From positions 3,286,001 to 3,350,000 of the forward strand of contig JBLDXI010000015.1 in NCBI GenBank assembly GCA_047495785.1: DNA of 64,000 bases, written 5' to 3'. Made by a program: the position numbers and the translations under genes. A model generated the notes under the pieces. It searched no databases. It saw only the letters and a list, made by a program, of their open reading frames with translations, and was not told where the DNA came from. Below, in pieces: positions 2,291 to 27,600 of this stretch (the first letter of the stretch is position 1; the number at the start of each line of letters is the position of its first letter). The DNA is from Lepidodermella squamata (taxonomy: Eukaryota; Animalia; Gastrotricha).

Positions 2291-3135
2291 GCATGAAACT
2301 TCAAAGAAATTTCTTTTTTTTAAATAGTTTGAATATTTACTGCTAGTGAATGTGAGGAACAAGTTTAGATGGTCGATTAGGTGATTAGGTGATCAGGTGA
2401 TAAGTTGATCAAAAATCGAAGGTTATAAGGTTAGAACGCCCGAGTGGGGACTGTGGGATAGCTTGGAAAGAAAAATGTAAAGTTCAGATTACCGCAGTTT
2501 CCGAAATGCAAGCCTAAGCTGCACTGCAAAGAACATCAAAGTGCCGACAAAACGGTATCTGAATATTTTATTTAGGGTAAAGTCTCCTAATGACGATTGA
2601 GGAATCAATTGTGAAAGTTTGTTTCTCTACAATCGTCGAGTCGTTTTCGAAGCGGTTTGCGCTGGGATGTGCCAAGGGTCCCCTTAATCACCCCACAAAA
2701 GCTCACTATTGAGCAAAACAGGGCCGATGAGCAACTGTTGATAAGCAGAGGTGAGCCACAATTGTGCGCCATTGGGACCGTGCGTTTTTGATACCTAACT
2801 TCAAATTTAATGTGCACAACTCATGATTTTGACCTGAAAATGGCTAGATAGGGTAAATGGTCGGTAAATTGCCAAACTGCCAGAATCGGTTCGTCGAAAA
2901 ACCGTGAATCCGAACACGGCTTGGTTATGCACTACTAACAACTTCATTCTACGACTGTATGCATGGAATAATGACAAAATCAGATCTTAAGTTGAGATGA
3001 TTGATTTAAACCCAACATTCTTATTTTGCTTTAGTAAAATTGCATTTGAATACATTTGAGGTACAAATAAAATTGCTTTATAACAATATTTCAATTTTAC
3101 TCGCATTAATCGTAGGATTTTTACTAATCAATATT

Positions 3136-3570
3136 ATGGTGCTATTTGTCAAATCTGCAAAGGCGGCCTCTAAAAGCGATGAGCCTTACAAGTGTCAATT
3201 TTGCGATTTCACTCATGCAAGTAAGAAAGCGGTGTCGAAACACAGTCGACATTCTCATCCTGATGAAGTTGCCAAGCTGCCGAATGCCGTGAAATGTCCA
3301 TTTTGCGATGCGGCCTTCCCGGACGTATTGAGCTTGCGAAGTCACTGCGCGGTGGCGAAAAATTGTCGTGGCCCTGAAAGAATGTGGAAGTGTCGATTCT
3401 GCGATCTGAGTTACAACGAATTTAGTGCTAGGAATAACCACGAACGCCTGAACCACCGAGAACAGTTGGGATCGCTTCCTGGAGCGGTGCAATGTCCGAA
3501 GTGCAAGGATTTCGTGTCAAGTAAACGAGGTCTGACCTGGCACATGAAAACTTGCGGGCTAGAACTCTAG
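3136..3570 (+). CDS. Short intronless zinc-finger protein (144 aa), copy 2
   Basis: Ungapped paralog of 924-1358 (MVLFV...MKTCGLEL) with all Zn ligands conserved. Confidence 0.85.
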   Translation: MVLFVKSAKAASKSDEPYKCQFCDFTHASKKAVSKHSRHSHPDEVAKLPNAVKCPFCDAAFPDVLSLRSHCAVAKNCRGPERMWKCRFCDLSYNEFSARNNHERLNHREQLGSLPGAVQCPKCKDFVSSKRGLTWHMKTCGLEL

Positions 3571-4078
3571 TCTAGAATCTAGGGCTCTGTTTAGTCTATA
3601 ACCGTCCACCCTCTCGTTTGATATATTATTTAATATATTTTAGTACGGACTTTGTCTTTTTTATTCTTTGTTTTTAGATATTAAACTTTATTGGGCTGAT
3701 TCAAGATGGATTCTCTCGATCGTGAAGAGATTTGAGTTTCGTTTCTCAAAGCTGATTTCTAATGTCAGCCAGATTATCACTGTCGTAAAACTTGATGCAA
3801 GTTAGATCAGTTTTGGATCTGGTATTAATTCCTCGTTTGTCCTGTATTTTCTTTTCCTTTTTTGCGTAGTCTCGAATTCCATAGATGAAAATTTGGTTAC
3901 TGACTTTTTTAACACAAATGATTGGATTTATCCTATGATCTCAGGATCAACCCTTGATGATGCTAATTCCGTTTTTTATTAACCAAGGCTGAGCAGCTAT
4001 TATATATGTAAATACTGTTGCTAATTCTGCTGGCGATTGATTTAGAACGCGGTCAGCTCGAAGTTTGTCATCTCATTT

Positions 4079-4270
4079 ATCGCTTCTCGGCCTTTTTGGC
4101 TATGATCAAAGTGTAGTATCTGTTCTTTGTAGTTTAATATCTACAACGGCCTCCATGTGGGGCCTACGATATTAGCCCTATTTTTGGCTAGCCGGGCGGG
4201 AGCAGCCAGCTTGCTGGACCCCGTCCACGAGTCGGCCCGGTATTGCAGTACCTCCGGGATTCGGCTCACC
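4079..4270 (+). ncRNA. U2: U2 spliceosomal snRNA, copy 2
   Basis: Identical by eye to 1912-2103; about 220 bp of 5' flank nearly identical. Confidence 0.97.
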
Positions 4271-4424
4271 CCCTGAAACACGGGGGAATGAAAACTAAAA
4301 ACAAATATCTATTCAGAAGATTTCAAGTGAATTTGTAAGATGGGTAAAACGATCGTAAAAGTTTTCATCTCATCACCGGAGTTAGAAGGAAAAATCACTA
4401 AAATATTGGTAAAATGTGGAAAAA

Positions 4425-4685: not shown

Positions 4686-6003
4686 ATGAAAGAACACTGC
4701 GCAGTCGTTGGTTTGTCTCCTAACCTCCACGAGTCAAATAACCGGCGGTAATGTCAACTATGAGCGGAATATCCTTATTTTACTTGCTTCATTCAGTCCC
4801 GACTCAACGTTGAATATTCGCTGTCCGGAATGTCTGAAAAATAATGGAACGAATACTATTCAAGTCCTTCTAGTTTCGGTCACCTCAGAAAACAACGAGC
4901 TATATGCGACCGAATGGAACGTTCTTAATTTCACGTACAGAGCTGATTAATCATTTAATTGTTGAATTTCACCAAGTTTTTATGGCAATTTAGATCAGGC
5001 TGTGTAGGTCTGGACTTCGCTTGCAAGGAATGTTTGAATTGCACACGTTTCGCTTTGAAAATTCAACCGTCGAAAGGAGAAGAAATTAAGGCGACTGATA
5101 GCAATCAATCACTCGCATTCTCGAACATTCAGTCCTCATTTCGCCTAAATCAGTAAGTTTTAGATATTGCGTGCCAAATTTCTTAAATATTCGAAGTAAT
5201 TTAGAGCTCTTCTCCGGATGTCTTACTGCTGTCCAAAGTGTGATAGCGAGTCCGACATTTCATTGGAAATATCTGAGCGCGATTCTGCCCCGATTTTTAC
5301 TAGTTTTCGAGCTGGAAATTCTCAAGGAAACGAGTACAAAAATCTTTAATTATTGAAAAATTATTAAAAATATGTATGTCTAGGACAAACAAGCTGTTGG
5401 CTGATTTGGGGCACCGATGTGCTCTTTGTAAGCATTCTTGCAGCTTGAGTCTGAGCTTTTTCGAAAAATTGGAAAGTGATGTCACATCTCTGAGGTATTT
5501 CCTTATATTTTTCTCGAATTTTGCTCGAAATTCCCTCCTTCAGCGCTAGAACAACGACGGTAAGCGTTGCGGATAGTGGGTTATCATCAATTGCTGGAAA
5601 AAATCAACAGGAGTCTGAAAGTGATGACCCTCCGATAACTGTGAAGCGTCGGAGAAGAAAGCCGACTGAGAGTGCAACACTCGTTTCTTGTTCGTGGTGT
5701 GCTTTCACGACGCGACAGTTGAGCAATTTAAGTGTTCATACTCGCAAGTGCCACCGTGATGAACTGTTGAGCAAGCCGAGCACGTTGGTTTGCAGTCGAT
5801 GTCAAGGAATTTTCGTGAACGAGCGTGGTTTGTTGTACCATCGGCTAAAATCGAATGGAAATTGTGAGGCACTGACTAAACGGTATCGCAACAAATTTGC
5901 TGAGAAAAAATGGCCGTGTCAACGTTGCAGTTCTGGCTACATCACTGAGGCATCTCTGAAAAAGCACGTCGAGAAGTACCATCCTGTTAAAGTATGCGTG
6001 TGA
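4686..6003 (+). CDS. ZF-A: 4xCxxC N-terminal domain + 3 zinc fingers (~352 aa)
   Basis: Exons 4686-4747, 4797-4934, 4994-5152, 5205-5333, 5384-5494, 5544-6003. All GT-AG and phase 2, giving an open frame homologous exon-by-exon to five neighbours. Confidence 0.85.
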
Positions 6004-6985
6004 AGGTTGTCCGATTTATGGCTGATCTGAATCTTGAGTTGAAATTGAAATTGATCATAAAATTGATTTGACAATCCGAATTTGTTCATAACTTGTCGAG
6101 TAACATTGAATAAATTTTAAAATTAATGGAGTCAATTGATGTCTTGTTGGCTTTCATTGAAATGCTCATCTTGAACCCATTTGAGCAAAAAAGGATTTCA
6201 TGATAAAAAGGGTACCCTCAAAAGCGAAGCTTCAGAGACGCAGGCGTTGTGTTTCCACCGAATGGATTTTCCAACGCACTCAAATGTTTCAGTCACAAGT
6301 TGTGATTTTCGAAAATGCAGCTGTCATTGGGCTTGGAACATTTTCTAAACTTGAAAATAATTTATCCTCGCAATCTTCTCCTTTTAATAATTATTCTGCA
6401 TTTTTCCACAAAAATTTAACACGAAGATACCCGAGCAGCATGCGACTACGACAGAGGGGCGTGCGGGGGACTGTATGCACTGCGTGCACGCCCCCGAAGG
6501 AGTTCATATTCTTTGAAGTTTCCTAGCCACACCGACTTTCTCGGTTCTCTCTGCCTCCATCCCTTTTGCATCCTACCTCGTAGTCCGTAATTTTGTTAAT
6601 TATCCCCGAATTTATTGCGGACATTGAAAATTTGCCGGTGAAAACGCGATAATTCGATAATTTTCGGTATTTTACCGGGTTGGACCAGATTATTCCGGAT
6701 TTTTTTCTGTCTCTATTCTCATGGCATTTTGAAGCTTTGTAAGACTTTTCTGGCCGTGGGATTAGCCTTTGCCTCTCATTTTTAAGATTCTGGTCCCTCT
6801 TTCCTTTGGTTTTCCTCTGTTTAGTTATGGGACACACTGCAATTTTTACTTTCGCTCAGTAATTTCTGGATTTCAAGGATCATTTATTCAAACTCTTGCC
6901 TCGTTTCTAAACTGCCTTGCTTTGCTAGATCAATTTATGTCTCTTTTCTGATCAGCTAATTTTATAAAAAAATATAGTTTATAAA

Positions 6986-9815
6986 ATGGATCAAGGACTT
7001 TTGATTGTCGGTTTGACCCCGTATGCCGGCGATCCTATGGCGTCTTGGTAGGTCCAAATCGTAGGCCATGAATCTTATTTAATTTCCACTGCACTTTCAG
7101 TCCGGAGACTCGGTTAACGCTTCGATGCACAAACTGCTCGAATGACGCTCTGACGTCGGCTGGTAATCACCTGGTCAATGTTTCCATGTCCTCGGAATCG
7201 AACGGATTTTTCGCACGAAAGTGGAACATTCAGAATTTCGGGTAAAAAAAAGTTGCGAATTTCGGTCCTGTTTTCGAGATGTTTGTTGTCTCAAGTTCTG
7301 CTCAGATATCGTACGCCTTCATCTGTAAGAACTGTTCTGCAAATTCCGACTTCATTTTGGAGTTGAAACCAGTTCGCGCTGATGCGACGCTGGGTGACTA
7401 TATGGAGAACCCTAAACGGTCAATTTCTATGACAAACATCGAATTCGACTTCCAGCTGAATCAGTTAGTTACAGTTTTATTAATTTCCCTCTCTTCATTG
7501 GATTTTCTAAAGCTTGGATGTGAAGTCGTCTTATTCGTGCCGAAATTGCGACAACGAAGCGCCTGTCAGCATATCGATCAAGTCCAGCCTATCAGCGCCG
7601 GTTTTCCCGTTCTTCCAGGCGGAAAAGCCACTTGAAGCGGAAAATGGGTCTTTGCTTTTAAATTTTCTCAATGTTTTAATTGATGTATAATTTTAGATCA
7701 AGCGCTTTGCACGCCGAATTGGGCTATCGCTGCAATCTATGTCAACACATGTCGAAAATTGCCATAAAGTTGGTGGATATGTTGAGCAAGCGAGAAGCTC
7801 CAGTTTTGCCTCTTAGAAGGTTGGAAAATAATCACCCATTTTACATGATAAATTTGATAATATTTGATTTTAAAGAATCGTAGCTCCTGATGCTATTCCT
7901 GTAGTTCCCCTGAGGCCGATCATACCCAATTCGCGGGAAACACCCCAACCTGTTCATTCAGGCTTGAGATCTGGCAGAAATGCCGAGGCGTTCGCATTAA
8001 TACCTGCCACCCAAGTGCGAGGCTCAACTACCGCCTTGGTTCCTTTGATCTCTAACCATCAGTCGACTTTTTTGCGACCGGCTGAATCCTCGTCAACACA
8101 GGCTACAACTCCATCGCCGATTCGTAAAAGGGCTGGGAGGCCGCTGAAGGAAAAGCCGAATTCATCCGTCGGAATAGTTGAAACAAGCTCAAATGCCGTG
8201 TTGAATCAGAACCGTATGTTGCGAATTTTCTACCTGTGAAATCATGAGAATTACTAATACCTATTCAAATTTTTAAATTTTGGAAAAGGCGGTGGCTACA
8301 GTAGAAACCGAATTTTGAGGTTTTATCCGGCAATTATTGACTTGTTTTATCTGGCAATCTAAATTACGACCTTAACCATCCAAGAATAAGGTCCACTCCA
8401 AACCAATTTCCAGCTAATTTAAACAGATCCAGGATGAACTCTTTGGCCGTAGATATTATTGAGTCGAATTTGAAATTGAACTTGATTAAATTAATTAAAT
8501 TAAATTAAATTAATAATTAATAAGATAAAATAAAATAAAAATAACGAAGTGTTATTTCATACATATTTATGTAACCTAGGGCTTGGTGCTTGGTTAGGGT
8601 TCTGGGTTAAGGTTAGGATTAGGTTTGGGTCGATTTTCGATTATTTCTGAAGTTCGCCTTGCACTTCACTATTTTCAAGCGGAAAAAATTGACTACGTTT
8701 TCGGAACTCCGATTTTTGTTTGAAAAACCGAAAACTAGTCCGCTGGCATTTCCTTCACGTTTCCAGCTCGAATTAAATGAAAAGAAATACGTATGAAAGT
8801 TCAACATTTCTTAAATATTAATGAATGAAAGATTGCTCCCTTAATTTAATTTAATTTACTTTTATTTTATTTTATTAATTAATTTATTCAATTTAATTTT
8901 GTATCTTATTTTTCTATTTTTCGACTTTTAATCTTGTTTTGTTTTTCAGATGGCAATGCGAAAAATCAAACTGATCTGAAGCCTGCCAAGTCATCGACAG
9001 AATTGAAGAACCAGTGCTCGCTGTGCCCTTTCAATGTTGTTCGCCTTAACAAATTTTGGGAACATATGCGAAATGTGCATCCGCAAGAAGTCGGCAAAAT
9101 GGCGGGTTCGACGCGCTGCCCTGATTGCAACCGAGTGTTTCAAAGTGCGAAAAGTTATCTGGTCCATCGTCGTCACAAGTCTGGCTGCCGCCGGGCGCCG
9201 TTTGTACCCGCTCGTCATCACCAGCAAACTAAGCCTCATAATAATCGAAAGCGATTGCCGTGCAAGTACTGCAGCGAGTCTTTCAGTGACCATGGTACCA
9301 GGCATACTCATCAGCGTAATTATCATGCTGATGAGCTCGAGAAATTGCCTCATTTTCGGCGATGTGACAGCTGCCCGTCTTTCTTCCTGAGTGAAAAGGG
9401 GCTGGAAAGGCACAAACTTTTTTGCCCGAAACCGATTCCAGCCGCCGAATCTAACTCAAAGAAACGTCTTGAATCATCCAAGCGTCCCGCCTCCCTTCGC
9501 CGACACGAGTTCATGAGTCATGATGAGACTGCGGCTAAGTTGCGCTGTGAGGACTGTGGAAACGTTTACCACTCGAAGCTCGTGCTGAAGCTTCACCGAG
9601 GACGCTGGAAAGGCAACTGCGCTTCGGACAAATCTTTGAACCACAAGTGCCGATTTTGCGGGAATAAGCACGCGACTGCGCAGGGTAAACGCAAGCACGA
9701 AGATGGCCACTTCTTCAAAGATGCAACTACGACGAATTCGATGACTGCCAACCCGCCGGTACCTAAACCGCCTGGAACTGAGCCGATTCCGGAGACTGTT
9801 GATATCGAAAACTGA
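6986..9815 (+). CDS. ZF-B: 4xCxxC domain + AT-hook-like motif + ~6 zinc fingers (~610 aa)
   Basis: Exons 6986-7047, 7101-7241, 7296-7463, 7513-7647, 7697-7819, 7876-8213, 8950-9815 splice into one open frame ending ETVDIEN. Confidence 0.85.
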
Positions 9816-9920
9816 CTTTGATTTTTGGCGCTTGAACAATTTTTATAGATAATTTAATCGGAATTTTCCCTTTGAATTTTGAACCTTAGGAATTGGATCT
9901 TTAGATTCGATTTTATCAAC

Positions 9921-12439
9921 ATGAATGAGGGACTTGCCATATTAGGATTGGCGCCAGATCCAGCCTCGAAAAGGTAGCGAAATAACCGAAAACAATAATT
10001 TTATCCATCTTAAACAAATTTCAGCTTCGAGTCGCGGCTAACTCTCGAATGTTCGAATTGTTTGAAAAATACTTCGCCCGCCGAAAATGCCCATTTGAAC
10101 ATTGCAATGTCATCAGAAAGCAGCAAATTGCTGACCCGAGACTGGAGGGTCTTGAATTTTGAGTAAATTTCCATTATTTCTTTTTAATATTTTTCCTCGA
10201 AATTGAAAATTTTACAGAGTGGCCCAGATATGGTACAGATTCACTTGTGGAAGCTGTTCAGCTGAGGCAGAATTTGTGTTGGAGTTGAAGCCTGAGGGTT
10301 CTGTGACAACCGATTCGTCGAAGAGCCCAATAAAATCGATCACTTTGCCGAAAATTGATTACCACTTCAATATCAATCAGTTAGTTCGATTTATTTGAAA
10401 ATTTGTCCTTTTTTAAGATTATTTTTCAGGTTAGCAATTAGGGCGACTTATTGTTGTCGAAATTGTACGAAAGGTTCAGAGGTCGATATGTTGATCAAGG
10501 AAACGGATCTTTCTCCAGCTTTCGCCTATTACAGCGCGAGAAGAGCGTTCGAAACCGAGAAAGGGTAAGATGAAAAATTAAATTGATCAAAAATTTTGAT
10601 TTTTGAGAATTTATAGATCCAGCACCTTTTGCGCCGAGCTAGGCCGTCGTTGCAGCTCATGTCAGACCCTGTCGAGGCTGGAAGTAAAATTCACCGAAAG
10701 ATTGATCAAGGGCAGTCCTGAACCTCCTCCAAGGTAGGAAAAATAATTTAACTTACAACAGCGAAGCGTGTCCTTGGAAAATGGTCAAAAAATGGTAAAA
10801 TAGTTGCAGCATTGCGAGAAGATGGAAAAAGTCCGATTCAGTGGTATCTAAAATATGACACAAATCTTATTGAAACGATGGCTGTCAATAAAATTGAGAT
10901 TTCTGATAAATTCAGGTACAAGAAAAAAATGTTCACAGCCGATTTTTTAGCTGGATTTTTCCCCTTTTAAATGTAATCTTATTTGAGGGTTGAAAAAATG
11001 GGGTTTTCAATTTTTCTAAAACCATTTCATGTATCCAATCCTTCATTTTAATTCAATTTAATTTAATAAATAATTTATTAATTTATTATTAATTATTAAT
11101 TTATTGAACTAGCACCTAAACTTTAAATCTGTAGTAACTGCCTGTTAACGCCATTTTTCTTTTTAGGATTGAAAGTAAATCCAGCTTGCCGCTTGTTCCG
11201 ATGCCCAACTCGGTTAATGAAGAAAAATCTATGGTATCGAGTGACATTTCCCGATCTGCCTCACCTGTCGTGAGCGTTATCGATCACCCTGTTACACCGT
11301 GCCGGGTTGAAGTTGTCAAAGCTGATATCGTAATTGAACCGAAGGAGAAAACTAGCGAAGAAAAGCCATCAAAGTTGGAAGAACCCGAGCCGAAGGGGGT
11401 TAACAACTGTCTTTTCTGCCCGTTCACTTCTAATAGAGGAGGCGATCGCCTGCGCCATATGCGTAAAATGCACCCTGATGAAATCGCCTGCTACCCCGGT
11501 TCAACCCGTTGCAGTCATTGCCGCGAGATGTTTCCGAACTTGGTCTCTCTATCGCGCCACAATCGAAAGTGGAAAGGCCGCTGTGAACCGGCAGAAGAAA
11601 GCCAAGATTGGAAACTATCCTGTCGCTTTTGCGATTCGAAGGTTCGGAACAAGTCGATGAGGACCCGCCACGAACATTCCGAACACTTCGCTGAGCTTCA
11701 AAAGCTGCCGAAATTTCGCCGATGCGAGCTTTGCCCAGCTTATTTCCTGTCAGCACTCGGCTGGCAAAACCACCAGGCTTCATGCCACGCGCCGTCGAAT
11801 TCAGATTCAGTGATCCTATTAAGCGAAACCCCGGGTATTGCCATCCCTCAACCAGCGAAAATCGAGAAAAGCGAACCCCGCCGTGAAAGAAAACGGCGTA
11901 GGCCTATCATTGATGCATCTCAAACAGCGTCGAAAAGGCGATCTGTTCGGAAATCGGCGGGCATCAATTCGGATGGAAAGGGCTTCAAATCTATCGACGA
12001 TATGAAGAAATCAGCTCGCAGAAATGCGTCCAATCAGCGTTTCCAGTGCTCGTATTGCCCTGTTTTCTCGCGTTTAGCCTGGGCACTTCGCGAGCATGTT
12101 CGCAAAAATCACGACAATGAAGTTGCGAAGTTGGCGGGGTCGAAGCGTTGCGATGAGTGCCAGCAGTTTTTTCACAACGACCACGCCTTGCACATTCACC
12201 AGGGCCACTCCAAGGGCAAATGTGCAGCTTTGGGTGCGAAAGAGGAAAGCGACATTAAATGCTCCGTTTGCCACGAAATTTTCGCTAACGAGCCTTCGAA
12301 ATCAGCTCATGAGCGCTTCTCGCATCGCAGCTCTGCCGGAAATTCGGATTTGTCCGTGGCTCAACAGAAGCCGAGCGAAACCAGCCTGGTAGATCGGCCT
12401 AGGCATCTCGAACAGGAAAATGTCGATGTTGAAAATTGA
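9921..12439 (+). CDS. ZF-C: 4xCxxC domain + 7 zinc fingers (~625 aa)
   Basis: Exons 9921-9973, 10025-10162, 10218-10379, 10430-10564, 10617-10733, 11167-12439; all introns phase 2; ends ENVDVEN. Confidence 0.88.
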
Positions 12440-12559
12440 ACCTTATTTTTTGTGGTGAAATTCTAATTTTTCTGAATAAAATATATCGTGCTTATTTTGG
12501 GTGAAAAAATAAATTAATTTTATCATTATTCCCTGAAGTGTTTTTTTCAAGTTGAAATA

Positions 12560-14368
12560 ATGCGCGAAGCTATTTCGATCCTTGGATTCGATCCATACTC
12601 CTCCGATTCGTATGTTTCCTTGTTTCTATTTTATTCGATTTTCCTGGTGATTATTTCATTTTTTAAGGCCTGATTGTCGAGTAAAACTGTCTTGCAATAC
12701 CTGCCAACCGGCCAGTTGTCGGTTCCTGAACCTATCCCTAGCAGCTGGAACTAACCAACTTTCCGCTATAACATGTGTCATTTCAAATTTTCAGTAATCG
12801 ATTTTTCGAAGGATTCTTGATATTGTTAACGATTTTGATGATAGAACTGCTCAAGGCTATTACAGCTTCAATTGTCTGAACTGCTCCTCTGAAATCGAAA
12901 TCCTTATTGAGCTGAAATTCGGGAAAGATTCCCTCGACGAGAAATTAACTGCGGGGAATTCATCGGAAAGGTTCAGCAAAACTTACTTCAATTTCGATTT
13001 CAATCGGTAATTTCTAAACTGTGAAAGGTTGTAAAATTGGTAAAATCTCACTCAGTCTAGAGATTGAAACGCTGTTGTCCTGTCGAGCTTGTAAAGCTGA
13101 TTCAGCGGTTAAAATCTCCATTAATGCAAGCGGTTCGGCTCGCGTTTTCACTTCATTTCAAGCCTGTGAACCCTTCGATTTGAACGATGAGTAAGTATGG
13201 GCCTAGTGAGCGCCCTAAATGTAAGGTCCAAGCTCTGAATTTGGGGGTTCCAGCTCTAAATTGTCCCAAAATAGTATTTTTTAGTTTGCGCTCAAGCGGT
13301 ATGTTTGGGAGTTTTACTTCAGCTTTCAGCGCCGTTATCGCTTCCAAGTATCGATTTTACAAATCAGTGATTTTCCGATATTAGAAGTATTGGAAGCCAA
13401 CATCAAAAATGTTTCTACCTAGCTGATGGTACCAGGTAGCTAAAATAAAAAATCCGGAGTCATTGTGAGGATCGGTATCGATCGGGAAATCTCGGGAAAA
13501 ATCGGAAAATTTAGCGCTAGAATAACTTCAGAGCGTTTTATACAACATGCGTTTTCATTCCTCATTTTTAGTGGTAATCTTTTTTTGAAAACAGGTCCAG
13601 TTCATGCACTACTAATATTGGTTTCAGGTGCGATTGTCAGAGTTGTTCAGCACTGAGCATGAGCATTGTCGAGAAGTTAACTGTTCGTGATCACTTCCCG
13701 CGTGGAAGGTAGGATTACCTGTATTTTTTTAGCCGGTGAAATTAAAATTATATGTTTTTTTTTCAAGAAATGCAAGTCATGATGTGGGAAACTGCGGCGA
13801 AAATGTGAACAAATTTGATGAAGTGCTTTTTAAATCTGAAAGCGGGGTATCATCTACGAATGCCTCTCCTGCAAAAACTTCAGTTCCCAAACCGGTAACT
13901 TCAACGAGTAGGAATCGGAGCAAGATGGGAATGAAGAAACTGAATGAATGTCCTTATTGCTCGTTTGCAGCGGCAACTAATTTTGGAATCACGGATCACG
14001 TGCGAATTAGCCACCCTGGTGAAATGGCCAAGTTACCTGATACAAAACAATGCATCTTTTGCGGAATCTTTTTTAAAGACACCCGTGGTCTGAATGTTCA
14101 CTTGCGTCGAGGAAAGGGTGATTGTTCGCGTAAGGTGACTAACTCTGGTGGCACTATACGAGTCCGCTGCCAGTTCTGTGACAACACTTATCGTAGCAAA
14201 GCATCGGCTCGCACTCACAAGCGAAGGAAACATCCTGATAAACTGGCAAGACCACCAGGTTTCTACGGGTGTAAATATTGCCCGGCTGTTTTCATTAATC
14301 TCGGGCGTTACAAGATCCACCTCAAATCATGCATTTCAGCACCCAGACACGATTCAGAAAATATTTGA
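12560..14368 (+). CDS. ZF-D: 4xCxxC domain + 4 zinc fingers (~395 aa)
   Basis: Exons 12560-12609, 12668-12793, 12845-13006, 13056-13190, 13595-13708, 13768-14368; all introns phase 2. Confidence 0.85.
13197..13510. repeat. Dispersed repeat in ZF-D intron 4; inverted homolog in laminin intron 10
   Basis: agtatcgattttacaaatcagtgattttcc...ggtagctaaaataaa (~13347-13450) matches the reverse complement of ~21115-21210; flanks also align. Confidence 0.75.
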
Positions 14369-14431
14369 AAGGGCTTGCATTTTTTTGTTTTTCCCTGTAG
14401 TTCCTTAATCAGGTTTTCGTAGTGACTGTTC

Positions 14432-16268
14432 ATGGAAGGTAGCCTGTCGATAATTGGTTTGGCACCTTTTGCCTCAGATCCGACTGCCTCGAGGTTTGTG
14501 AAACTTCACCTGATTCAAATTATGAAAATATTCGTTTCTAAACAGCCCAGAATCAAGGTTGACATTGGAATGTACAAGGTGTTCGAAGATCCATTCATCA
14601 AGTCGAAATTCGAATCTGAAACTCGTCAACGTTTCAGTTACTTCCACGGAAGATTCGATCCAAGCCCGCGATTGGAATCTCATCGACTTCGAGTAATAAT
14701 AACTCCTCAATTTATTCTTATTTTATTCGGATTAATATAGGATTGCGCAAGTGTCCTATGTCTTCATTTGTAAGAGCTGCTCAGCTTGTGCAGAATTTGT
14801 GTTGGAGGTGAGGCCGAATGTTGGCAATTCGCAAGAACCCAGTGGAACCTCGTCTCTCGCATTCGGGAAAGTTAAATTCAACTTCCGCCTGACTGGGTTT
14901 GCCTTGTTTTAGCATTTTCAAGCTTGAGTATTGCAGTCATTTGTTACAGTCTAGGTATCTCGGCCTGCTATACCTGCAGGAGATGTGCGAGCCAGGCCGA
15001 AATTCAAATTTCCATCAAGGATAGGTTCGCGACCCCCATTTTTCTCGACTTCAGGGCGAGAAAGCCTTTGGAAATCCAACCAGAGTAGTTTTAGCTTCGA
15101 TTTTTGTAAAATATAAGTTCGAGATTTTTTCTGTCTAGATCCAGATGCAGCATGCTAGCTGTGGACCTCAGCCACCGTTGTAGCTCATGCCTGACTTTGT
15201 CGAATCTAGCGCTGAAGATAAAAGAGCATTTGGTCGATCCTATTCCTCCCGTTCTTGTTCGGTTTGTCCATAAACTTTCGACTATATAAACTAAAATGCT
15301 CCGATTTTTGCGGGTGTTCCAGGATTCCAACCGAACCCAATACACCGATTTCGAGCCCTCGTGCTGTCAGTCATTCTCGCGTTGTAAGTCCAGCGAAACA
15401 GTCCACTGTCGATTTGACTACGCCATCCCCGACCATCGCTATCGCTTTGCCCACTCCACCCCCCACCATCGCTACTGCCATCTCCTCGGAGGAGGATTCA
15501 ATTTTGAAAAAGAAGAGAGGCAGGAAACCCGGTAGCTTTAACAGGAAATCTTTAAAAAATCCACCTTAAATGATTTTTTTCATTTTTTTCCGCTTTAAAG
15601 GCCCCCGTGCTATGAAGTGTGCCGAATGTCCATTCGTGTCATCAGCCGTCGCCACCTTTGAAAGGCACAAGCGAATAGCCCACTCCGAAGCTGCGGTGGA
15701 ACCTGCCAGCGCGCGATGTGACAAATGTCACAAGAGCTTTTTGAACCCCCGCGGGCTTCTCGTTCATCGGATTAGGTCGAAGGGGAGCTGTTCGCCAGTG
15801 GTTGCCGCAGATGCTAGTCGAGAAGTTAGATGTACTTTCTGTCACAGTCTCTTTCCGCATAAGACATCGTTAAGTTTCCATGAGCGAAAGTACCACGTCG
15901 CGGAGCTGGAACAGTTGCCGACATTTCGCCGGTGCAACAATTGCCCGGCGTTTTTCAAAAACCTAGATAGTTTTCACAAGCATGTGCTGAATTGCATGCC
16001 GGGGCGAATCGGTTCCGTCTCTGACAGCAGGCCGAAGTGCCTGCGGTGCCACAAGAGTTTCCGCAGCAACCGCGCCTTGCGAAATCATCAAACGCATCGT
16101 TACCTCAACTGTTCACCGCCCGCCGGGAAACCGGTTTCGCACGCGTCAGAAATGGCCGAAAAATCTGCCGGCAATTCGAACGAAATGAGCATCACCCCTG
16201 GAAAATATGCACCGCCTTCTTCTAAGCTGGAGGCTGACATCGAACGAGTTGTTGATGTTGAAAATTGA
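14432..16268 (+). CDS. ZF-E: 4xCxxC domain + AT-hook-like motif + 5 zinc fingers (~499 aa)
   Basis: Exons 14432-14493, 14546-14692, 14741-14896, 14950-15084, 15139-15261, 15323-15531, 15601-16268; ends RVVDVEN. Confidence 0.86.
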
Positions 16269-16433
16269 TATCGGCTTATTTATAATTATATGGCTGCTTG
16301 GTAACTTGTCATGAAATTTCGTGACATTTTCTAGCTAGAAAAAGGTCATTTTTGTGTGCGTTTTATGACCTGTTGATTCACCTTGAAATTTCGTTTTTTG
16401 AACGTTTTTCCCTAATTTAGCAATAATTTTGAA

Positions 16434-17717
16434 ATGGCTAAATGTCTTTCTATATGCTCGGTTCAGCTCGGTGCAATACTCGATCCGGCAGATCCTGCTA
16501 TTTCGTCGTATGATTCATTTCTATTAAACGTCAGTAATATTTGATGGTTTGAAACGCAGCCACGATTCAACATTGGTTTTACTGTGTTCACGTCCCAAAG
16601 CTGGTGAAAAACACAAACAGCTTCTAAATCTGTCGGTATCTTCAAAAACTGCGAAAATTTCGCTGGTGCAGAAGGTCGAGTTCAATGCGAGGCAAGTTTA
16701 TCAACTAGAAAAAAATCGCATTTACACCATAATTCTTCATTTTTTAAGGATAGCGAAGATTTGCCACGTCATTACTTGTGGAGCTTGTGCGACGCCATTG
16801 AACTTTTCCTTGGGGTGGAAAATTCTGGGGGAAAATGAGGCGTCAGATCAACCCCCGGCTGTTTTGCCGATTGTCCAATCTGCGAATAAAATCGACTATT
16901 TGTTCCAGCTCAATAGGTTGGTTTTTCCAGCATTACCTATATTCCGAAAATCGTTAACTTCGATATTTTTGTTCCTAGACTTGACTTGGAAACCATGCAT
17001 TGCTGTTCAAGCTGTGGGCACGAATTCACAGTTGAAACGTGTCTGAGTGGGAAATATTCCTCACTTGTTTTGACCAATTTTGAGGTCAAAGAGCCGACGG
17101 AGCTTGCGGCGTTTCCCGTATTGGAAATCGGTCACCGATGTTTCTCGTGTAGAGCTCCGTCTAGATTACTCCTGAAAATCGAAGATGCAGAATCAGCATC
17201 TGAACCCGATGAATCTGTTTCTGAGGAAGATCATGTAGATTATCCTAACATCACCGAGGAAAATCGAAAGACAATGCTTGCCAAGATGGTGAAATGTGGC
17301 TATTGTGGGTACAGTGGAAGGTGCCGAGGTCATCTCAACTTGCACATGCGGTTAAATCACAGGGAAGAAATCGCGCGATTGCCGGGTTCAAGGCGATGCA
17401 GCTCGTGTGGCATGGTTTTTCCCAACAAGCTTAGCTATATCAGGCATCGGCTGCAGCTAAGTTGTGATAAGATGTTGCTTGTTTATCAATCCGACGGCAC
17501 TGCTAAGATGAAATGTCGATTTTGTGATTCTGCGTTTCAATCCCTCTCAGGCATAGCAAGGCATGAGCGATCCCAACACCAGGATAGTTTGTCAAAATTA
17601 ACTGCTTCGAAGCGGTGCGAGAACTGTTTCTTACAATTTACAAAGTCTTCTGGATTGGAACTGCATGCAAAAGCCTGTCGAAAAAATGGCGCACGTAATA
17701 GCCGGTGCACAATTTGA
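16434..17717 (+). CDS. ZF-F: divergent 4xCxxC domain + 4 zinc fingers (~370 aa)
   Basis: Exons 16434-16507, 16560-16691, 16749-16916, 16979-17717. Intron 2 has a GC donor; modules 3-4 and the fingers lie in one exon. Confidence 0.8.
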
Positions 17718-17839
17718 TTTGACGACATCAAGTTGGAGATATCATTCATGCTTAAAATTCTAATTATAATTGCCCGATATATTTTGCTTGATATGTATGA
17801 ATATTTTTTGAATGATGTTTAATAAAATACGAGCGTTCG

Positions 17840-18206
17840 CAACTCGCACATGCGGTTAAATCACATGGAAGAAATTGCGCGATTGCCGGGTTCACAACGA
17901 TGCAGTTCGTGTGGCATGGTTTTTGCTAATGCCCTGAGTTATGAAAGGCATCGGCAACAGTTATGTTGTAATAAAATGCTGCTTACTCATCTACCTGACG
18001 GCACTGTTAAGGTGAAATGTCAATTTTGTGATTCGGCGTTTCAATTAGCTGCGAGCAAAGCAAGGCATGAGCGAAAACTACACAACGATAGTTTAGCGAA
18101 ATTAACTACTTCAAAGCAATGCGAGAAATGCCTCTTATACTTCGACTCTTATTCTTCTGGAATAAAATGCCATGCAAAATCGTGCCGCAAAAGATCGCGC
18201 ATGTAA
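17840..18206 (+). pseudogene. 5'-truncated duplicate of the ZF-F finger array
   Basis: Homology to ~17337-17700 starts inside finger 1 (HMRLNH, no CxxC) and extends into the 3' UTR; a 118-codon frame remains open. Confidence 0.7.
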
Positions 18207-18640: not shown

Positions 18641-21600
18641 TTAATATAACGGGCAATAGTCATTGTCACGAGAAATCGTGCCGTTGTCGCCGTTACGGTG
18701 GAACGTCGACAGCGGCAACAGGCTGGCTGACGACGGTGGGCCGAGGTAGATGGCATCGATACAGCCCACAAAGCTGTCCGTAACTGGGGTGAAATGCGGC
18801 GCTCGTAACGTGGTCGGCAGGCCTCCAACGTACAAATGCATTTGACGCGGCGCCAAAGATTCACGACCTCGTCTGAAAAACATTGAAAATTTAATTTAAT
18901 TGAAATTCGAAATTTAAAATTAAATCTAAAAAATATGGATTAAATTTTAAAAAATAAAAAAAAATTCGAAATTTCAAAATAATTTAAGGAGGATTTTTTA
19001 ATTATATTTATTACCTTCTGCGATATAAGCGCAAGATTTGGCGCTGATGATCCGCAGCGATTTTGATGCTGTCAGGCCTGCTAGCGACGACAATTCGAAT
19101 CCAGTCTCCCGAGCATGGGTTCGAAATCGGGACATTAACCGTCTGCCGTAGCGACCCTGAACCCGGCATAGCATACAACCGGCCAGCCGATAAGAAAATC
19201 GACAAGCTATTCCGCGCGTCAGACAAATCGTGAACATAAGCCAGCAGCGCCCTGGGCGTCCTAGGCCGCACCATCAGGGTCAGGGTGAATTGGTACGGGT
19301 CCAGTACGACGTTATGGAAAAGTGAAGCAGTCGACGGCCGTTCGATCAATTCAGCGAAGAAAACGCCGTGTTCTAGGCTGTCGTAGCAAGCCGTCGTGTT
19401 GACCGGCTGCGGTTGCTGGAACAACTTTCCGTCGAGCGTGAAATCACTCAGCGTGCCAATCAACGTCTGCCGCCCGTCGATTTCCATGCGTTCAAAGCCG
19501 CGCTGTTCAATCGCCGCTTTTTCGTACATTGAATAGAAGTCCTGCGAGAAGCCGCCGAGGAACAACCAGTCAATGCCGTCAATTTTCTTGTTGTTGTAAC
19601 TCGACGGGAATTCTTGAGTGATCGGCGGGTCGAGATCGCCGGCGAAACCGTACTTATTGCCGTCGCGGAAAAACGTCAACTTATGCAACCGGCCGTCGTT
19701 GTACTTCGCCATTGAGCTATTCGTCGACAGTTCCAACATACCGGAACCGGCATCGAAGCGGAAAATTATCCGACCGTCGAGTAGGTAGGCTATCATGTAG
19801 TCCGGGACAATCGGCTTACCGTTCGCGTCTTTTCGAGTCGTGTTGCCATGCGCGTAGAAAATCAACCCGGACCGATGGACGGTTCGCATTTTTACCGAAA
19901 CACTGAACCGATCGGAAAATTTCGGTTTTCCCATAAATCGAACCGAAGCGGTTGGTTTTGCGAAGGTGTAACAGTAAGGATTTTCCGGGATTTGGGTGAC
20001 ATCTGGCAGACCAGCTTTACGGTCCAGCTGGCACCCAGAGTGCTTAGTCCGGCTGCTTTGAACCGAACAGTGGCCAAGCCGGTATTGAGTACCAGGTTCT
20101 TGCCGGAAAACTTCCGCCTTGTTGTTGATCATCAATCGACCGATACAGCCGTCAAGTGATTGGCCGTAATCGATCGATTCCGAGTAGACCCCAGCGCCGC
20201 CTAGGAAAACACTGACCGGACCTTCCAGCAACACATTTCCGTCATTTGGCAGCAATTTCTGAACCTTATCGCCCGTTTCCTTCCAAATGTCCCGATCTTC
20301 AACGTTGAGCAGTAAACTCTTGTCATTTGTATTCAGGGCGATTAGGACCGAAATCCAGTCACCCATGAGTTGGGTGACGGGTGCTGACAGCTTGACGTAA
20401 TCGTTTTCGTTATTCCGGTAGACGACTACGATTTTTCGCCGTTGTTGATCTTCGATGATCGAACATTCGAGAGTCCAGCCCTTTTCGGTACGCATGAATA
20501 GAACCAGCCCGGGTTTGACCGTTTTCAGCATGAAAGCGATGCGTTCGACATTGGCCGTGTCGAATTTGTAGAACGAGGTCGGGCGGCCGGAGAAGGAGAC
20601 CAGCCAGCTTTCGGTCTCGCCACTCGGGCACGTTTCATAGCCGAATTTCGCGCCGTAAGATCGGTGGTTGTAAGGCTTGAATGCGATGACTTCCTCGGAT
20701 TCCAGAGCGAGGTAGAACTCTTCTTTAGCCTCTTTCGGCGCGAGAAGCGACACTTTCCCAATGCAGCCGATGAGTTTGGGTTCGACGGCTCGGTTTTCGT
20801 TGAGATAAACGCGTCGGATCAGCTTTTCGGCGATGGTTTCAGGTACACCGCCCAGGTACAAGGTATCGACATTCAGCGTATGGGATGAGTCGGTTTGAGG
20901 GTAGTTCATCCGCTGAATTTCAGGGCAATCCAACGCATACAAAGAACTGACCGTATTGCTCACCTAAAAATTCGCGAAACAAAATTAAATTGAAAATTGA
21001 AAAATCCACCCTAATAATTAAAAAATCTGTAAAAGACATAATTGAGGGTCTCGTTTAAAATTTAAGCGTCAGGGCAAAAGAAATTTCCGATTTCCTTAAT
21101 TCACCCTGATATTCTTTATTTTAGCTACCAGATGGGTAGGAAAATGTTCAATTCTGATTTATAAGACTTCTAATAACGGGAAAATCACTGATTTGTAAAA
21201 TCGATACTAGGAATCGATATTGGAATCGATTATCGGAAATAGGGAAAAAAAATCACATTTTGTGAAATCTCGTGCTGAAACCCTAAATTTAGGGTGACCA
21301 CTTGGCCCACTTCGAAAAATTCCTATTCTTCGGGAATCCCAAGTTATTTTTTTCTAATTTTCCAATTTTTCCCTATTTTTTTAATTTTTCAAATCCAAAA
21401 ATTTCAAAATAATATTGAAATTGAAAAGGTCAACTCACTTCAACCAGGACTCTATGAGGATAGCCATCGTTGAATTTCTTGCCCTCGCAATTTTCATTCA
21501 GCGTGATAACTTGCTTATAGAAATCGAACTGAAGTCGCAGGGCGCCGTCGCGAAGGTCAAGCGCCACAAAATCGTTCTTATCATCCGAAGCCATGAAGGC

Positions 21601-24600
21601 CAGCAACGCGTTGGGTTGATGCGTTGAAAATTCAATGGCAAACGATATGACTTGAAATTCAGTTCTATTGATCTTATTCGCGGCGAGCGGGAGAGAAACA
21701 AAGCTCAAATCTCCAGATAACAACGCCATATTGTATTCATCAGTTCGAGACCTGTTAAAGTCAAAATTAAAATCAGGAAATATTCAAAAATTTCCAGACT
21801 TACATTCCATTGGCCAGATTTAGGTTGGTGAAATTAGCCAAATTGAATAGAGCAGTAGGCTTGGTGGAATACAGGTCCAAATGCTGGTACAGACCAGTCG
21901 AAGCCGATCGAGTGATACCTTGAGGACCGGCGAAATCTTTCGGCAGCCCGCCGACAAACATTCGCGGCATTTTCGGTCTGAAGAAGAAATTCGAGTCCGG
22001 CAAGTAGGCTCGGAACATGCCAACCGCCGTTTCCTCCTTGCCACGGCCCGAATGTCTCGCGCCAACCGTTAAATTCAACTGCTGAGCTGACCGACGAATC
22101 GATAAACGGTGCATAAGGCCAGGGGTGTTACAGGCCTTGGAAAAGGCGTGATTCAGCTCGACTGAACCTTCCATACGGCTGTTCATGCCGAGATTCAAGG
22201 TAGCCCAGTATTTGAAGCGGCCCGGTTCCGGTCGGCTGAGTTCCAGGGCCAAGAAATCAGCTTCATTCGTCGCATCACCCGCCAGACCAGTGAAATCAGG
22301 GCCAAGGTAGAAAACCAGCGATTTTCCAGCCATATCAGTATCAGGCATTTCGCAGGGTAGGTGCTGCAAATCGACAGATAAATCAACACCCATAGCCGCG
22401 ATAGTTTCGTGGTCCAGCGCGATTTCAGCCGATGACGTCGAGCTGTTCAACAAAATCGCCGGGCGAATGTCGATTAGCTGAGCTGTAGCTTCCTTACTGC
22501 GGCCGATGAGGGACCATAAGCTTTCAGTTAATTCGCCGATTTCAGAATTCAACATCCGCAACTCCTGTTCGACCTTCTTCAAACTCTCCCAGTTATCGTT
22601 GATCTGCTCGAATGAGGACTTGGCCCGATTCGCGTCGTTACCAGCCAACCGGAAATTCCGCTCAGCCTCTGGGTCTTTACCCTGAAGATTCGCGATAATT
22701 TGAGTCGCCTCCATGTCCCGCTGCTTCGCATCGGTTTGAATCGAGTCGAAAGCCGCATTCAACGCAGCGGTTCGATCGGCAAGGTCGTCCAGGCCAATGA
22801 CTAGATTCATCTCCTTAACCATGCCGAGAATCGTCCCCGTCTGCTCGATTTTCGCCTCAATATCAGCCGCTCGTTTCTGCTCACTGGCCAGTGTGGCATT
22901 TATCGCTTTTTCATCCGATTCAACGCCGTTTTTCTCGCGTTGCAGCCGGTCGGTTTTCGTGCCGATTGACGCCGCTCGATCTCTGAAGCGGTTCAAATCG
23001 ATCCGCGAAACATTTTCCGCGACTTTTTGAATCATCGCCACAGTTTTGTCTAAAGTCAACCCGGCTGATGTCAACATTTCAGCGATTTTATCGTAACTTG
23101 TAGCCACCTTAATCGCCTGGCTCTGACTCTCGGACGGGTTGAATAGCTGCTGCTCAATCGCCTTGACGCGATCCTCCATTTGCTGGACGCGTTTCGTCTG
23201 CTGGGGAACGACGTTATCCTTGTACTTTTGAATCTCAGTCTGCCAATTCGCGACAAATTCAGCCATTTGCGCCTCGAGTAGGCTGCACTGCGATGACATG
23301 TCTTCAAATAACGCTGGCCCATGAGCTGATTCGCACTGCTCAAGCGACGCGTTCAAAGCACTCATATCGCGATTGTAATCGGCTAAATATCGCAGAGCAG
23401 TTTGTTCCTGGTCAGAAATTCGCGAAATTTTCTCCTTAGCCGCGTTTAACTCAACAGCCCCGTTCGATAAATTCGTCCTTAGATCTTCAGCCATTTTCAG
23501 CAGATGCGCGACATCTTTATCCAAATCATCCAGCTTTTTCGGCAGGGTCGTCTTCAATTTCGCCTGAATTTCATCGAGCCGTTTTTGGGTTGCGTTGAAG
23601 TTTTGATGCAGCGATGTTACTGTATCGTACAATTTATTCGTCTCCTTCAATTCAGTCTCCCAAGATTCGACCTCCATTTTACTGCCATTCAACGCACGCT
23701 CCATTTCTTGAATCTTACTCTGAGCCGCCTCGAGAACGTCTCGCCAGTTGAATTGAACAGGATCGCTTAGGCTTTTGATATAACGATTGATCAATTCGTC
23801 GAGAGATTTCAGCTCTTTCTCGAGATCGGCAATCGAATTCGTGATATTTTTGAATTTCGACGAGACGAGTTTCGATGAGCCGTTGAATTTATCGCCATTC
23901 GCCTTAACCTCCAACATTCGTCGCTGGAAATCGGCTAGATAGCCCTGGATTGTCTGCAGCGATCGCGTCAATTCACTCATCTGCTCATTCGCGTGAGATT
24001 CAATGTCCTGAGGCGATGAAGCCGCTAGGCTGTTGGTCACATTAGCCAACCGATTTTTCAGGTCGTTCAACCGATTTCGAGCTTCGACGGAGGCGGATAG
24101 CTGCTGTAAGCTATTAAAAGCCTCGGAGGCCTTTCGCTCTTCCTCATAGACATCACCAGCTAGTTGCCGGACGCATTCGTCACAGGCGTGGCAACCAATG
24201 CCTTCAATCGGCAGCCAACCAGGCGCGCAGGACTCGCAACGAGAGCCCATGTAGCCTTCTTTGCAAAGACATTTTCCTGTCATTTTATCACAGGTGAAAG
24301 AGCCGTTTCGACCGCATTCGCAGGACGTGCAGCCTTCGGCGGTGTATTGCCAATAGCCGTCAGCGCATTCGTCGCATTTTCGGCCTTTAACGCTGCTTGA
24401 AACGCAGGGGCATTGGCCGTTGTCCGGGTCGCAGGTCGCCGATTTCGAGGCGGCGCCGCATTCGCAAGCCTTGCAGCCCTCGCACGATTTGAAGCCGTAG
24501 TAGTTGGGCAGACATGAGTCGCAACGGCGGGATGTGACGTTTTCGCGGCATTTGCATTGGCCGGTAACGCCGTCGCAGCTTGACGCGCCGCATTTGTCGC

Positions 24601-27600
24601 ATTCGCAGGCGACGCAGCGGCGTTCGGTCGCTGAGCCGTAGAACCAATCGCGGCATTGGGAGCACGATTCGCCGGCGGTGTCGAATAAACAGGTCAGGCA
24701 GATGCCAGTTTGCCGGTCGCAGGCGCCCGGGTCGGTCATATTGATGTTCGAATTGCAGATGCACGGCTCGCACAGCTTGCCTGAGCTCGGGTCGCCAAAA
24801 TGACCAGGGGCGCATCTGTAAGCAAGATCAGAAATTTTGAAAAAATTGGAATTTTTATAGGTTTTTGGGAAAATAGGTTATTTTGGGAAGAAAAGTTTAG
24901 AATTCAAAAATTATCTTCAAAATCATATTATTACAATTCCGGTCGCGATGTCAAAAAATGTCAATCCGAATTCGAAAATTAATGCATAATTTCAACATTT
25001 TTGGCATTCATCACAGTAGAAATTAAATGAAAAATTGTATAAATTGTTAAAACCCTATAATTTGTATTTCAAGTGACCGTAAATAACAAACTTTTTCCCA
25101 AATAATTGGCCAATAATTTCACCTATGACGAGATTTTCATTTCGAGTTGAGGCTGATCGAATCATTTTATTCGATGCCAGAAATCTGAACCTTGCATACC
25201 TACAGGAAAAACTGGCTCCAGGCATGGTGAGGCCAGTTGAGATTTGCTAAAATATTCAGAAAACCAGCCTATTTTCAGGTTTCAGACTGCCTAATAACTA
25301 ACCCGAATAGCTTGCTCAATTTAAATCATTGAAATTGAATAAATTGGTTCCGAGTTCCGAGAAAGGTTCCAAGTAGATGACTCAGTAGATGGCAACTCGT
25401 GTTTTATTTTCCTCGACCGCCCACCGTAAGTTTCAACCTTGAATCATTTTTAAATTTTTCAAATTTTTCAAAATTAGCCGTCCCCAACTTTTCACTCGTC
25501 CCACAACACATGCAGTCTACTTATTTTTATCATAATGTGAAGTAATTTTCTAACTTACTGTTGACAATGAGTGCCAGAAAATCCAGGTTTGCAATCGCAT
25601 AGGACAACACGACCTCGGTTATCGACCGTGCAATTGTTGGCATACGACGTCTCGAGCGAGTTACCCGGGCAGCGGCACAACTGGCAAGTATCCGACTTGG
25701 AGTCGTAGTAATGCCCAGCCAAACACCGCTCACAGCGAGACCCATCAAAATTACCGGCGCACTCCTTGCATTCGCCAGTTTCACGATCGCACTTCTGCGA
25801 CCGGCCGCCGCAGTCGCAGGGCACGCACTCAAATCCGCCGTTGACAAGGGGCTTCCGGGTATAGCCATCAGCGCATTGCTCGCAGGATGTGCCGGAATAG
25901 CCAGGCGGGCAGCTGCAGATCTCAACGGATAACGCCTGTTGCTCGGGCGCTACTTCTTCCGGCATTTCAGTCGCAACGTCCAGGTACACGTCCTTCAAGG
26001 TGGCTGACTGCGGCTGGTTGTTGTAAGACGCGCGAATCAACACAGCCTTCAAAGAAATCAGAACTTCCATAAAATCGTCACGTGACGTCAGCGACCCAGA
26101 AACAACGCCCTGACCTCCGATTCTACGGAACGATCGCTCAGTCATCGCGACAGACAGTGGGACAGCCCGGCCATTTGCGGTGGCAAACGGGTTTTCGGTG
26201 AAAGTGAACCCGATAGCGATAGGCGGCGTGAATCGGCCGCCGATCAGAATCAAATCAGGCACAATCGCGCCGTTTGTCGACGTTCCCTGCGGCTCGGGTG
26301 ACACGCTGATCGTCCACCTTAAATTACCGCCATATGTCATGACTTTGTTGTTAAGGTAGCTGGACGGTGCGACGAAATAGTGAACGCTTGGGTCGATGTT
26401 ATCCGGCCGAAGCAGGAAATCGATGTGGGAAACAGAGGCAGGGTAGAAAAACGTGCGAATCTGTTGGTCACCCTGGGGTGTGAACTCTACGCTGGCCGGT
26501 GGGGTTGTCCGCCAGCCGGTCATATCGACGAATGGCTGCCAGGCTAGTTGTTGACTAGACCGGCAAAGCCTGGCCTGGTTCGAGCAGTAGCACTTCGTAC
26601 AGCCCTGTGGGTTCAAAGCGTCCAGGTGGTAGTGATTCGGCTTGCAAGCGTCGCATCGAGCTGAGGTGGGGTCGATGTTGGGTTTGCAGCGGCACTGGCC
26701 GGTTTCGCCATGGCAAATGCCGTCGAGGGTGCCGCGTTTATCGCAATCGCACTCGGTACAGTCGGGGAATGAGTAGAAACCAGCCCGGCAGCGGTCGCAT
26801 CGGCGGGATTCGATGTTTTCGCGACACGAGCAGTCACCAGTTTGAGGGTCACAAGCATCGACCCGGCCATCGATAACACCTCGTTTGTCGCAATTACAGC
26901 TCTGGCATCCTATAGAATAAATTTAAATTTTTTGAAATTTGATTAAAATCTTCATTTAAATTAGAAAAAATATTAGACGTAAATTGAAAATAAAATCGAT
27001 TAAAATTTCATTTTTAATTGAAATATTTAATTATTAGAAAAATCAAAATAACATGGCTAGTATGTCCCACAATATTTTATTTGGAATTCTTTTGGTAATT
27101 TGATTCAATTACTAGAACCTCCTTACTAGTAATGATATATTTGAGAACAATAAAAATTTATAGTTTCAAAAGCGAACTTCAAGGTCGATTGATCAATTCA
27201 TCAATTGAATTTCTAAAAAAAATTATAATAATTCACCTTGAATTCTGTTGTAGCCCCAAGCACCAGGTTCGCATCGATCGCACTTCTCGCCGCCAACATT
27301 AGGCGGGCAAATGCAGTTACCAGTCTCGGTATCACATGTGCCCTGGTCGCAATTGCACCGCTGGCAGTTCGGGAAACCGTAATAACCCGGTCGACAGGCC
27401 GAACATTGCCGGCCAATCACGTTCTCCTTACAATAGCACTGGCCGCCCAACGGAGCGCATTGACGGCCCCGGCGAGATACCAAAGTCTCATCCAAACCAC
27501 TCGACTCGCAATCACACGATAAACCACCCTGGTTGTAAGCAGTTGTCAGGGTGAATAGTAATTGCTGGCATAACGGGTCGCTTTCTTTCGATTCCTCCAT

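Follow-up and report, generated by a model that had tools for sequence, protein, structure and literature searches.

What kind of protein domain precedes the zinc fingers in a cluster of six genes from DNA assigned to the gastrotrich Lepidodermella squamata, and has it been described before? The cluster lies in a 64,000-nucleotide (nt) stretch of contig JBLDXI010000015.1 (the window), where genes A to F run in tandem on the + strand from 4686 to 17717. An earlier note, made from the sequence alone, had proposed that all six proteins begin with the same domain of ~200 amino acids (aa), that it carries four CxxC repeats, and that it matches no recognised domain. We consider it somewhat likely that genes A to F are old tandem paralogues in a zinc-finger family restricted to one lineage, with an N-terminal protein-interaction domain that holds two structural zincs.

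The DNA is eukaryotic: introns are GT..AG and ~50 nt long, and the window contains two U2 small nuclear RNA (snRNA) genes and one tRNA. In three-frame translation, one ordered series of short segments appears six times, each segment being free of stops and bearing a single CxxC. Gene models were made by picking donor/acceptor pairs such that the reading frame stays open, and a complete spliced open reading frame (ORF) was obtained for every gene. Each protein runs from the N-terminal domain through a Ser/Pro-rich, partly basic linker to C2H2/C2HC fingers. Splice joints in genes A and B come from contigs of one sequencing run (X1), flagged as probably RNA, which covers exons and not the A–B spacer. 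The features are as follows.

4686..5494, + strand: gene A, N-terminal domain with four CxxC, 199 aa; exons 4686-4747, 4797-4934, 4994-5152, 5205-5333, 5384-5494; phase 2; X1 joint 5152/5205
5544..6003, + strand: gene A, linker and finger exon, 3 fingers; X1 joint 5494/5544; complete ORF 352 aa
6986..7819, + strand: gene B, N-terminal domain with four CxxC, 209 aa; exons 6986-7047, 7101-7241, 7296-7463, 7513-7647, 7697-7819; phase 2
7876..9815, + strand: gene B, linker exon 7876-8213 and finger exon 8950-9815; X1 joint 8213/8950; complete ORF 610 aa
9921..10733, + strand: gene C, N-terminal domain with four CxxC, 201 aa; exons 9921-9973, 10025-10162, 10218-10379, 10430-10564, 10617-10733; phase 2
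11167..12439, + strand: gene C, linker and two finger modules, 7 fingers; phase-2 acceptor at 11166; complete ORF 625 aa
12560..13708, + strand: gene D, N-terminal domain with four CxxC, 195 aa; exons 12560-12609, 12668-12793, 12845-13006, 13056-13190, 13595-13708; intron 4 of 404 nt
13768..14368, + strand: gene D, linker and finger exon; complete ORF 395 aa
14432..15261, + strand: gene E, N-terminal domain with four CxxC, 207 aa; exons 14432-14493, 14546-14692, 14741-14896, 14950-15084, 15139-15261; phase 2
15323..16268, + strand: gene E, linker exon 15323-15531 and finger exon 15601-16268; complete ORF 499 aa
16434..17201, + strand: gene F, divergent N-terminal domain with degenerate first knuckle; exons 16434-16507, 16560-16695 (or read-through to 16916), 16759-16916, 16979 onward
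17202..17717, + strand: gene F, linker and fingers, in one ORF with repeats 3-4 (intronless ORF 16979-17717); complete spliced ORF 368 aa

Exon 1 of each gene (50-74 nt) encodes M..L.I.GL.P..DP and is followed by four CxxC-bearing exons. Within genes A to E the internal exons are 111-168 nt long, divisible by three, with one CxxC each; all junctions of the N-terminal part are phase 2, so that the four internal exons are symmetric (2-2). Introns in this part are GT..AG and 47-61 nt in length, gene D intron 4 excepted, and genes B and E enter the finger exon in phase 1. Gene F departs from this plan. Its repeat 1/2 intron position has no phase-2 GT donor and is either a 63-nt phase-0 intron or an in-frame read-through, and from repeat 3 onward repeats, linker and fingers form one uninterrupted ORF. 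Its first knuckle has lost the second Cys (C-S-R-P). The claim of CxxC repeats in all paralogues thus stands for A to E and fails at this degenerate knuckle.

Are the small exons real, and are they joined to the fingers? The X1 contigs listed carry three GT..AG joints, none of them in genes C to F. Those at 5152/5205 and 5494/5544 coincide exactly with two modelled junctions of gene A, exon 3/4 and exon 5 to finger exon, and that at 8213/8950 leads from the linker exon to the finger exon of gene B, skipping 736 nt. X1 pieces stop at 5152 and resume at 5205, with loose ends that repeat the letters of the adjoining exon. Because the 5494/5544 joint matches the model, the small exons of gene A are spliced to its finger exon, as the earlier note had assumed; the outcome that the note had named as refuting, small exons left unspliced to the fingers, is thus contradicted for gene A. 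Hidden Markov models (HMMs) of the individual repeats were run against all six reading frames of the window. Each matched exactly six segments, correctly ordered and confined to genes A to F, at expectation (E) values of 1e-16 to 1e-27; next-best matches were at 0.03-0.5. Spliced models and repeat HMMs together place the same domain at the start of all six genes, the X1 joints indicate that it is expressed, and the alignment of the six domains agrees with the consensus drawn earlier.

Between paralogues, domain identity is 21-41%, with the Cys and hydrophobic pattern kept. Synonymous sites are saturated (proportion of synonymous differences, pS, 0.71-0.84) compared with a nonsynonymous proportion, pN, of 0.36-0.56. 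The six paralogues are old duplicates, and the domain is conserved under purifying selection. We also compared the window with a DNA sequencing run (X2), a comparison that covers 40 of 114 differences, so that numbers are small. Among these 40, many lie in introns and spacers; all four in the N-terminal exons of B and C are synonymous, and the gene B finger exon has 8 nonsynonymous and 3 synonymous differences, mostly outside the fingers. We give almost no credence to the idea that the small exons arose as ORFs by chance or are pseudo-exons in decay. Gene F, with its lost Cys and altered intron, does look decay-like. Against the idea, each of the six ORFs is complete, intron phase is conserved, spliced contigs exist, nonsynonymous change lies well below synonymous and HMM E values go down to 1e-27. 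For genes A to E this explanation is refuted by the spliced contigs, the repeat HMMs, pN versus pS and the complete ORFs.

How could four such exons have come to stand in a row? Profile comparison of repeat against repeat gave a probability of 85% for 3 versus 4 and 43% for 2 versus 3, and repeat 1 had no detectable relation to repeats 2-4. MAFFT spontaneously stacks repeats 2, 3 and 4 around the CxxC; its alignments of mixed fragments were misplaced, with repeat-4 pieces set on repeat 3 and repeat-1 pieces on gene F repeat 2. Given the profile likeness, the stacking and the symmetric exons, the sequence points to internal exon duplication of a unit in which a CxxC knuckle lies between two strands. 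The domain may have originated in this way from a symmetric phase-2 exon.

We turned to structure prediction for the fold. An AlphaFold2 (AF2) model of gene F repeats 3-4 (16980-17201) has a predicted local distance difference test score (pLDDT) of 73.8 and a predicted template-modelling score (pTM) of 0.53. Residues 2-8/15-21 and 47-53/60-66 make up two beta-hairpins whose turns carry the CxxC, and the stretch between them is less confident; the sole helix beside the four strands has 4 residues. The beta-rich structure and Cys-based zinc sites proposed earlier fit this half-domain model. For gene F repeats 1-2, translated together with the 63 intron-like nt that keep the frame open, no usable model resulted (pLDDT 45.9). 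Foldseek comparison of the half-domain model with PDB returned nothing below E 1, the top rows being zinc-ribbon ribosomal proteins and Tim15, and matches in the ESM Atlas belonged to the CpXC, Zn_ribbon_21 and DZR families (TM 0.46-0.6). The model fits gene F repeats 3 and 4 as one long zinc ribbon, which it suggests weakly, with scores within noise. We propose that the ~200-aa domain would consist of four exon-encoded units in which a CxxC-tipped beta-hairpin is followed by one or two further strands. The eight Cys would bind two structural zinc ions, with neighbouring knuckles paired 1+2 and 3+4 and each pair perhaps forming a long zinc-ribbon-like unit.

Has the domain been described? Searches used single exons or the contiguous halves of the gene F domain, not the full spliced domain. 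Pfam gave zero matches at E ≤1 for any exon or either gene F half; the ZAD profile (zf-AD, PF07776) was unmatched at that threshold, and the KRAB, SCAN and BTB profiles found nothing in the N-terminal region. Repeat profiles against PDB sequences gave nothing significant, the best match being Rpo12, a zinc ribbon, at E 0.017. A profile of stacked repeats 2-4 was calibrated by leave-one-out, which recovered withheld A, B, C and E at 54-92 bits and missed D and F. Against 1.84 billion representative proteins this profile gave two matches and no recognised relative: one, a repetitive protein lacking CxxC, was rejected, and the other, of 7,872 aa and matched in six short stretches, was provisionally taken as chance. 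Word-index protein searches with the gene F ORF and the gene C finger exon found nothing, and two scans of metagenome contigs yielded no relative. A feature search of the ESM Atlas was uninformative, yielding small bacterial proteins without names at 0.92, and we found nothing relevant in the literature on zinc fingers of Lepidodermella squamata. In exon-wise and half-domain searches the domain is thus without a detectable described relative, and the earlier statement that it matches no recognised domain was borne out in Pfam, PDB, representative proteins and metagenomes. Since exon-wise and half-domain searches alone lie behind it, novelty is not secure. The MGAT1 exon elsewhere in the window (34132-34830) reaches at most 60-61% identity to any database protein, with molluscs, annelids and fish equally close; the source is thus a bilaterian whose close relatives are not represented in that database. 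If the assignment to gastrotrichs is right, the lack of homologues is partly due to poor sampling of the phylum.

These results bear on a different reading, in which the domain is a very divergent member of a described zinc-binding fold, either two tandem beta-tent (Yippee/Mis18/MsrB-like) modules or a classical zinc ribbon, and looks new as a result of the exon-by-exon search. The beta-tent fold (Yippee/Mis18, MsrB, CULT) has two four-stranded sheets, with zinc held by two CxxC ~50 residues apart. Here the CxxC-to-CxxC spacing is ~46-57 residues and the units have 3-4 strands, which, as a lead, resembles beta-tent halves. Zinc ribbons are the best matches of the half-domain model, and the leave-one-out profiles miss members as divergent as D and F; no beta-tent protein appeared among the structure matches of that model. 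We regard a divergent known fold as rather unlikely.

What might the domain do? In the six paralogues its isoelectric point (pI) is 5.1-8.0 and its net charge -4 to +2, and the remainder of each protein is strongly basic (pI 9.2-10.0, net +11 to +33). Conserved non-Cys residues of the domain are mostly hydrophobic or aromatic. Taken together, a neutral-to-acidic domain, a basic remainder and this pattern of conservation favour a structural-zinc protein-contact module over DNA binding. Paired zinc ribbons that bind nucleic acid (cf. TFIIS, TFIIB, transposase) and add specificity to the fingers would be the converse arrangement. Many zinc ribbons do bind nucleic acids, as is well established, and the weak sequence match to Rpo12, an RNA polymerase subunit, would suit such a role. 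Against it, the domain is neutral to acidic in six of six paralogues, with all positive charge in linker and fingers, and its conserved residues are not basic; we consider nucleic-acid binding by the domain improbable. The likeliest role of the domain would be protein-protein interaction, as self-association or cofactor docking. The linker, Ser/Pro-rich, partly basic and disordered, would be the second part of the protein. The third part is the conserved C2H2/C2HC finger module, single or in two copies, and the basic linker and fingers would bind nucleic acid. In function the domain could be an analogue of ZAD, SCAN or KRAB. Effector activity, co-repressor recruitment and transposon targeting, as suggested in the earlier note, gain no support from these data. 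More tentatively, and with rather less confidence than in the general reading, we suggest a possibly gastrotrich-specific, two-zinc all-beta domain that arose by fourfold exon duplication and serves oligomerisation or cofactor docking for CTCF-like few-finger chromatin proteins, independently of ZAD, SCAN and KRAB.

The fingers themselves form a defined module. A C2H2 finger with H-x4-H is followed by a ~12-residue linker (HP.E.AKLP) and a C2HC finger, and the same pair then repeats (C2H2-C2HC-C2H2-C2HC). The module has 15 invariant columns, shows 26-34% identity to the first sequence of the alignment, and is about as conserved as the N-terminal domain; linkers are long and not of the TGEKP type. 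By pattern, each protein has 3-7 fingers. Genes B, C, E and F match PF00096 and PF13894 with scores that reach or approach the gathering threshold, and the C-terminal part is zf-C2H2 (C-x2-C-x12-H-x3-5-H) by Pfam matches, by pattern and by comparison of the module profile with C2H2 proteins. The "fast-diverging DNA-binding arrays" of the earlier note were not found; in their place is a conserved four-finger module, with no TGEKP array. Against PDB, the module profile matched CTCF ZF7-11 best (E 6e-19, 72 bits), ~20 bits above generic poly-zinc-finger proteins. Basic patches in the linkers, KRRRRKP (A, 5640-5670), RKRAGRP (B, 8150-8190) and KKKRGRKPG (E, 15500-15531), look like nuclear localisation signals or AT-hook-like motifs.

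The same four-finger module occurs without the CxxC domain in two finger-only genes upstream (894-1355 and 3010-3567). Downstream of the cluster, ORF 17826-18203 contains fingers 2-4 of the module, very like those of gene F, and lacks the first finger and the N-terminal domain; it is probably a partial duplicate of gene F. A CxxC domain on any of the three was rejected, with no repeat HMM match nearby. Each finger-only gene is followed by a full-length U2 snRNA gene, and 894-2107 and 3010-4274 constitute a tandem duplication. The RNA genes are:

1912-2107: U2 snRNA gene, 159 bits
4079-4274: U2 snRNA gene, 159 bits
4425-4497, - strand: tRNA-Ala(AGC)

Genes B to F are separated by spacers of just 63-165 nt (9816-9920, 12440-12559, 14369-14431 and 16269-16433). 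The B-C, D-E and E-F spacers each have an unpaired acceptor-like site (TTTAG, TGTAG or CGTAG) 10-30 nt upstream of the next ATG. The C-D spacer has no such site and is the only one of the four with AATAAA. Judged by its layout, the B-F arrangement looks like a spliced-leader operon. High-copy repeats occupy 6650-6849, in the A-B spacer, and 8450-8900, within the 736-nt intron of gene B; summed X2 contig depth is 7418 and ~1500, respectively, versus ~100 elsewhere, and loose ends include TTAGGG-like letters. Further along the window, a large laminin-type gene with very long exons lies on the - strand (19011-32358; EGF-like, laminin G and N-terminal domains), and beyond it are MGAT1 and a site-2-protease-like ORF (35799-37097). 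All three are ordinary conserved genes.

Lineage-specific N-terminal domains such as KRAB, SCAN, ZAD and FiNZ determine the work of their zinc-finger families, and all four came to light in clades that are well studied. Another such module of independent origin, in a phylum for which hardly any molecular data exist, would be one more instance of the recurring pattern in which a family-specific module stands before fingers. It would also illustrate cleanly how exon duplication can build a domain, each symmetric exon contributing one zinc knuckle. For structural work it may provide a small two-zinc beta module; as long as its partners and targets are not identified, its practical use is modest.

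How, then, does the family compare with known systems? ZAD, of arthropod C2H2 proteins, is likewise an N-terminal Cys module before C2H2 fingers, with zinc coordination (Cys4) of the kind proposed here, encoded in tandem clusters of a lineage-restricted family. ZADs homodimerise (PMC7913770), and a role of that sort seems likeliest for the present domain. In contrast to the ~200-aa, beta-rich domain with four CxxC on four repeated exons found here, ZAD has ~75-90 aa, one C4 zinc site and a long C-terminal helix; ZAD membership was rejected, as PF07776 was unmatched and size and secondary structure are wrong. FiNZ, which lacks similarity to known domains (PMC10547256), KRAB and SCAN share with the present genes a family-specific N-terminal domain on small 5′ exons followed by a finger exon, so that the position before fingers in a tandem cluster parallels all four systems, as the earlier note had said of KRAB, SCAN and ZAD. 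FiNZ, KRAB and SCAN have no Cys/zinc sites and belong to hundreds of genes with long TGEKP-linked arrays, whereas here there are 3-7 widely spaced fingers and six genes within this window. Zinc ribbons such as ZitP, LysW, ribosomal S27e and eL43 and the NrdR N-terminus have two CxxC-tipped beta-hairpins, as in the model of gene F repeats 3-4, of which they are the best, though weak, structural matches. CTCF ZF7-11 resembles the finger module in its H-x4-H fingers, ~10-residue linkers and a C2HC last finger, as in ZF10-11. CTCF, however, has eleven fingers, and the module here has four, every second one C2HC, with its own HP.E.AKLP linker; orthology of these genes to CTCF is unlikely. The family adds one more case to a phenomenon already described, that of lineage-specific domains associated with zinc fingers (PMC10547256), and is not a new kind of system.
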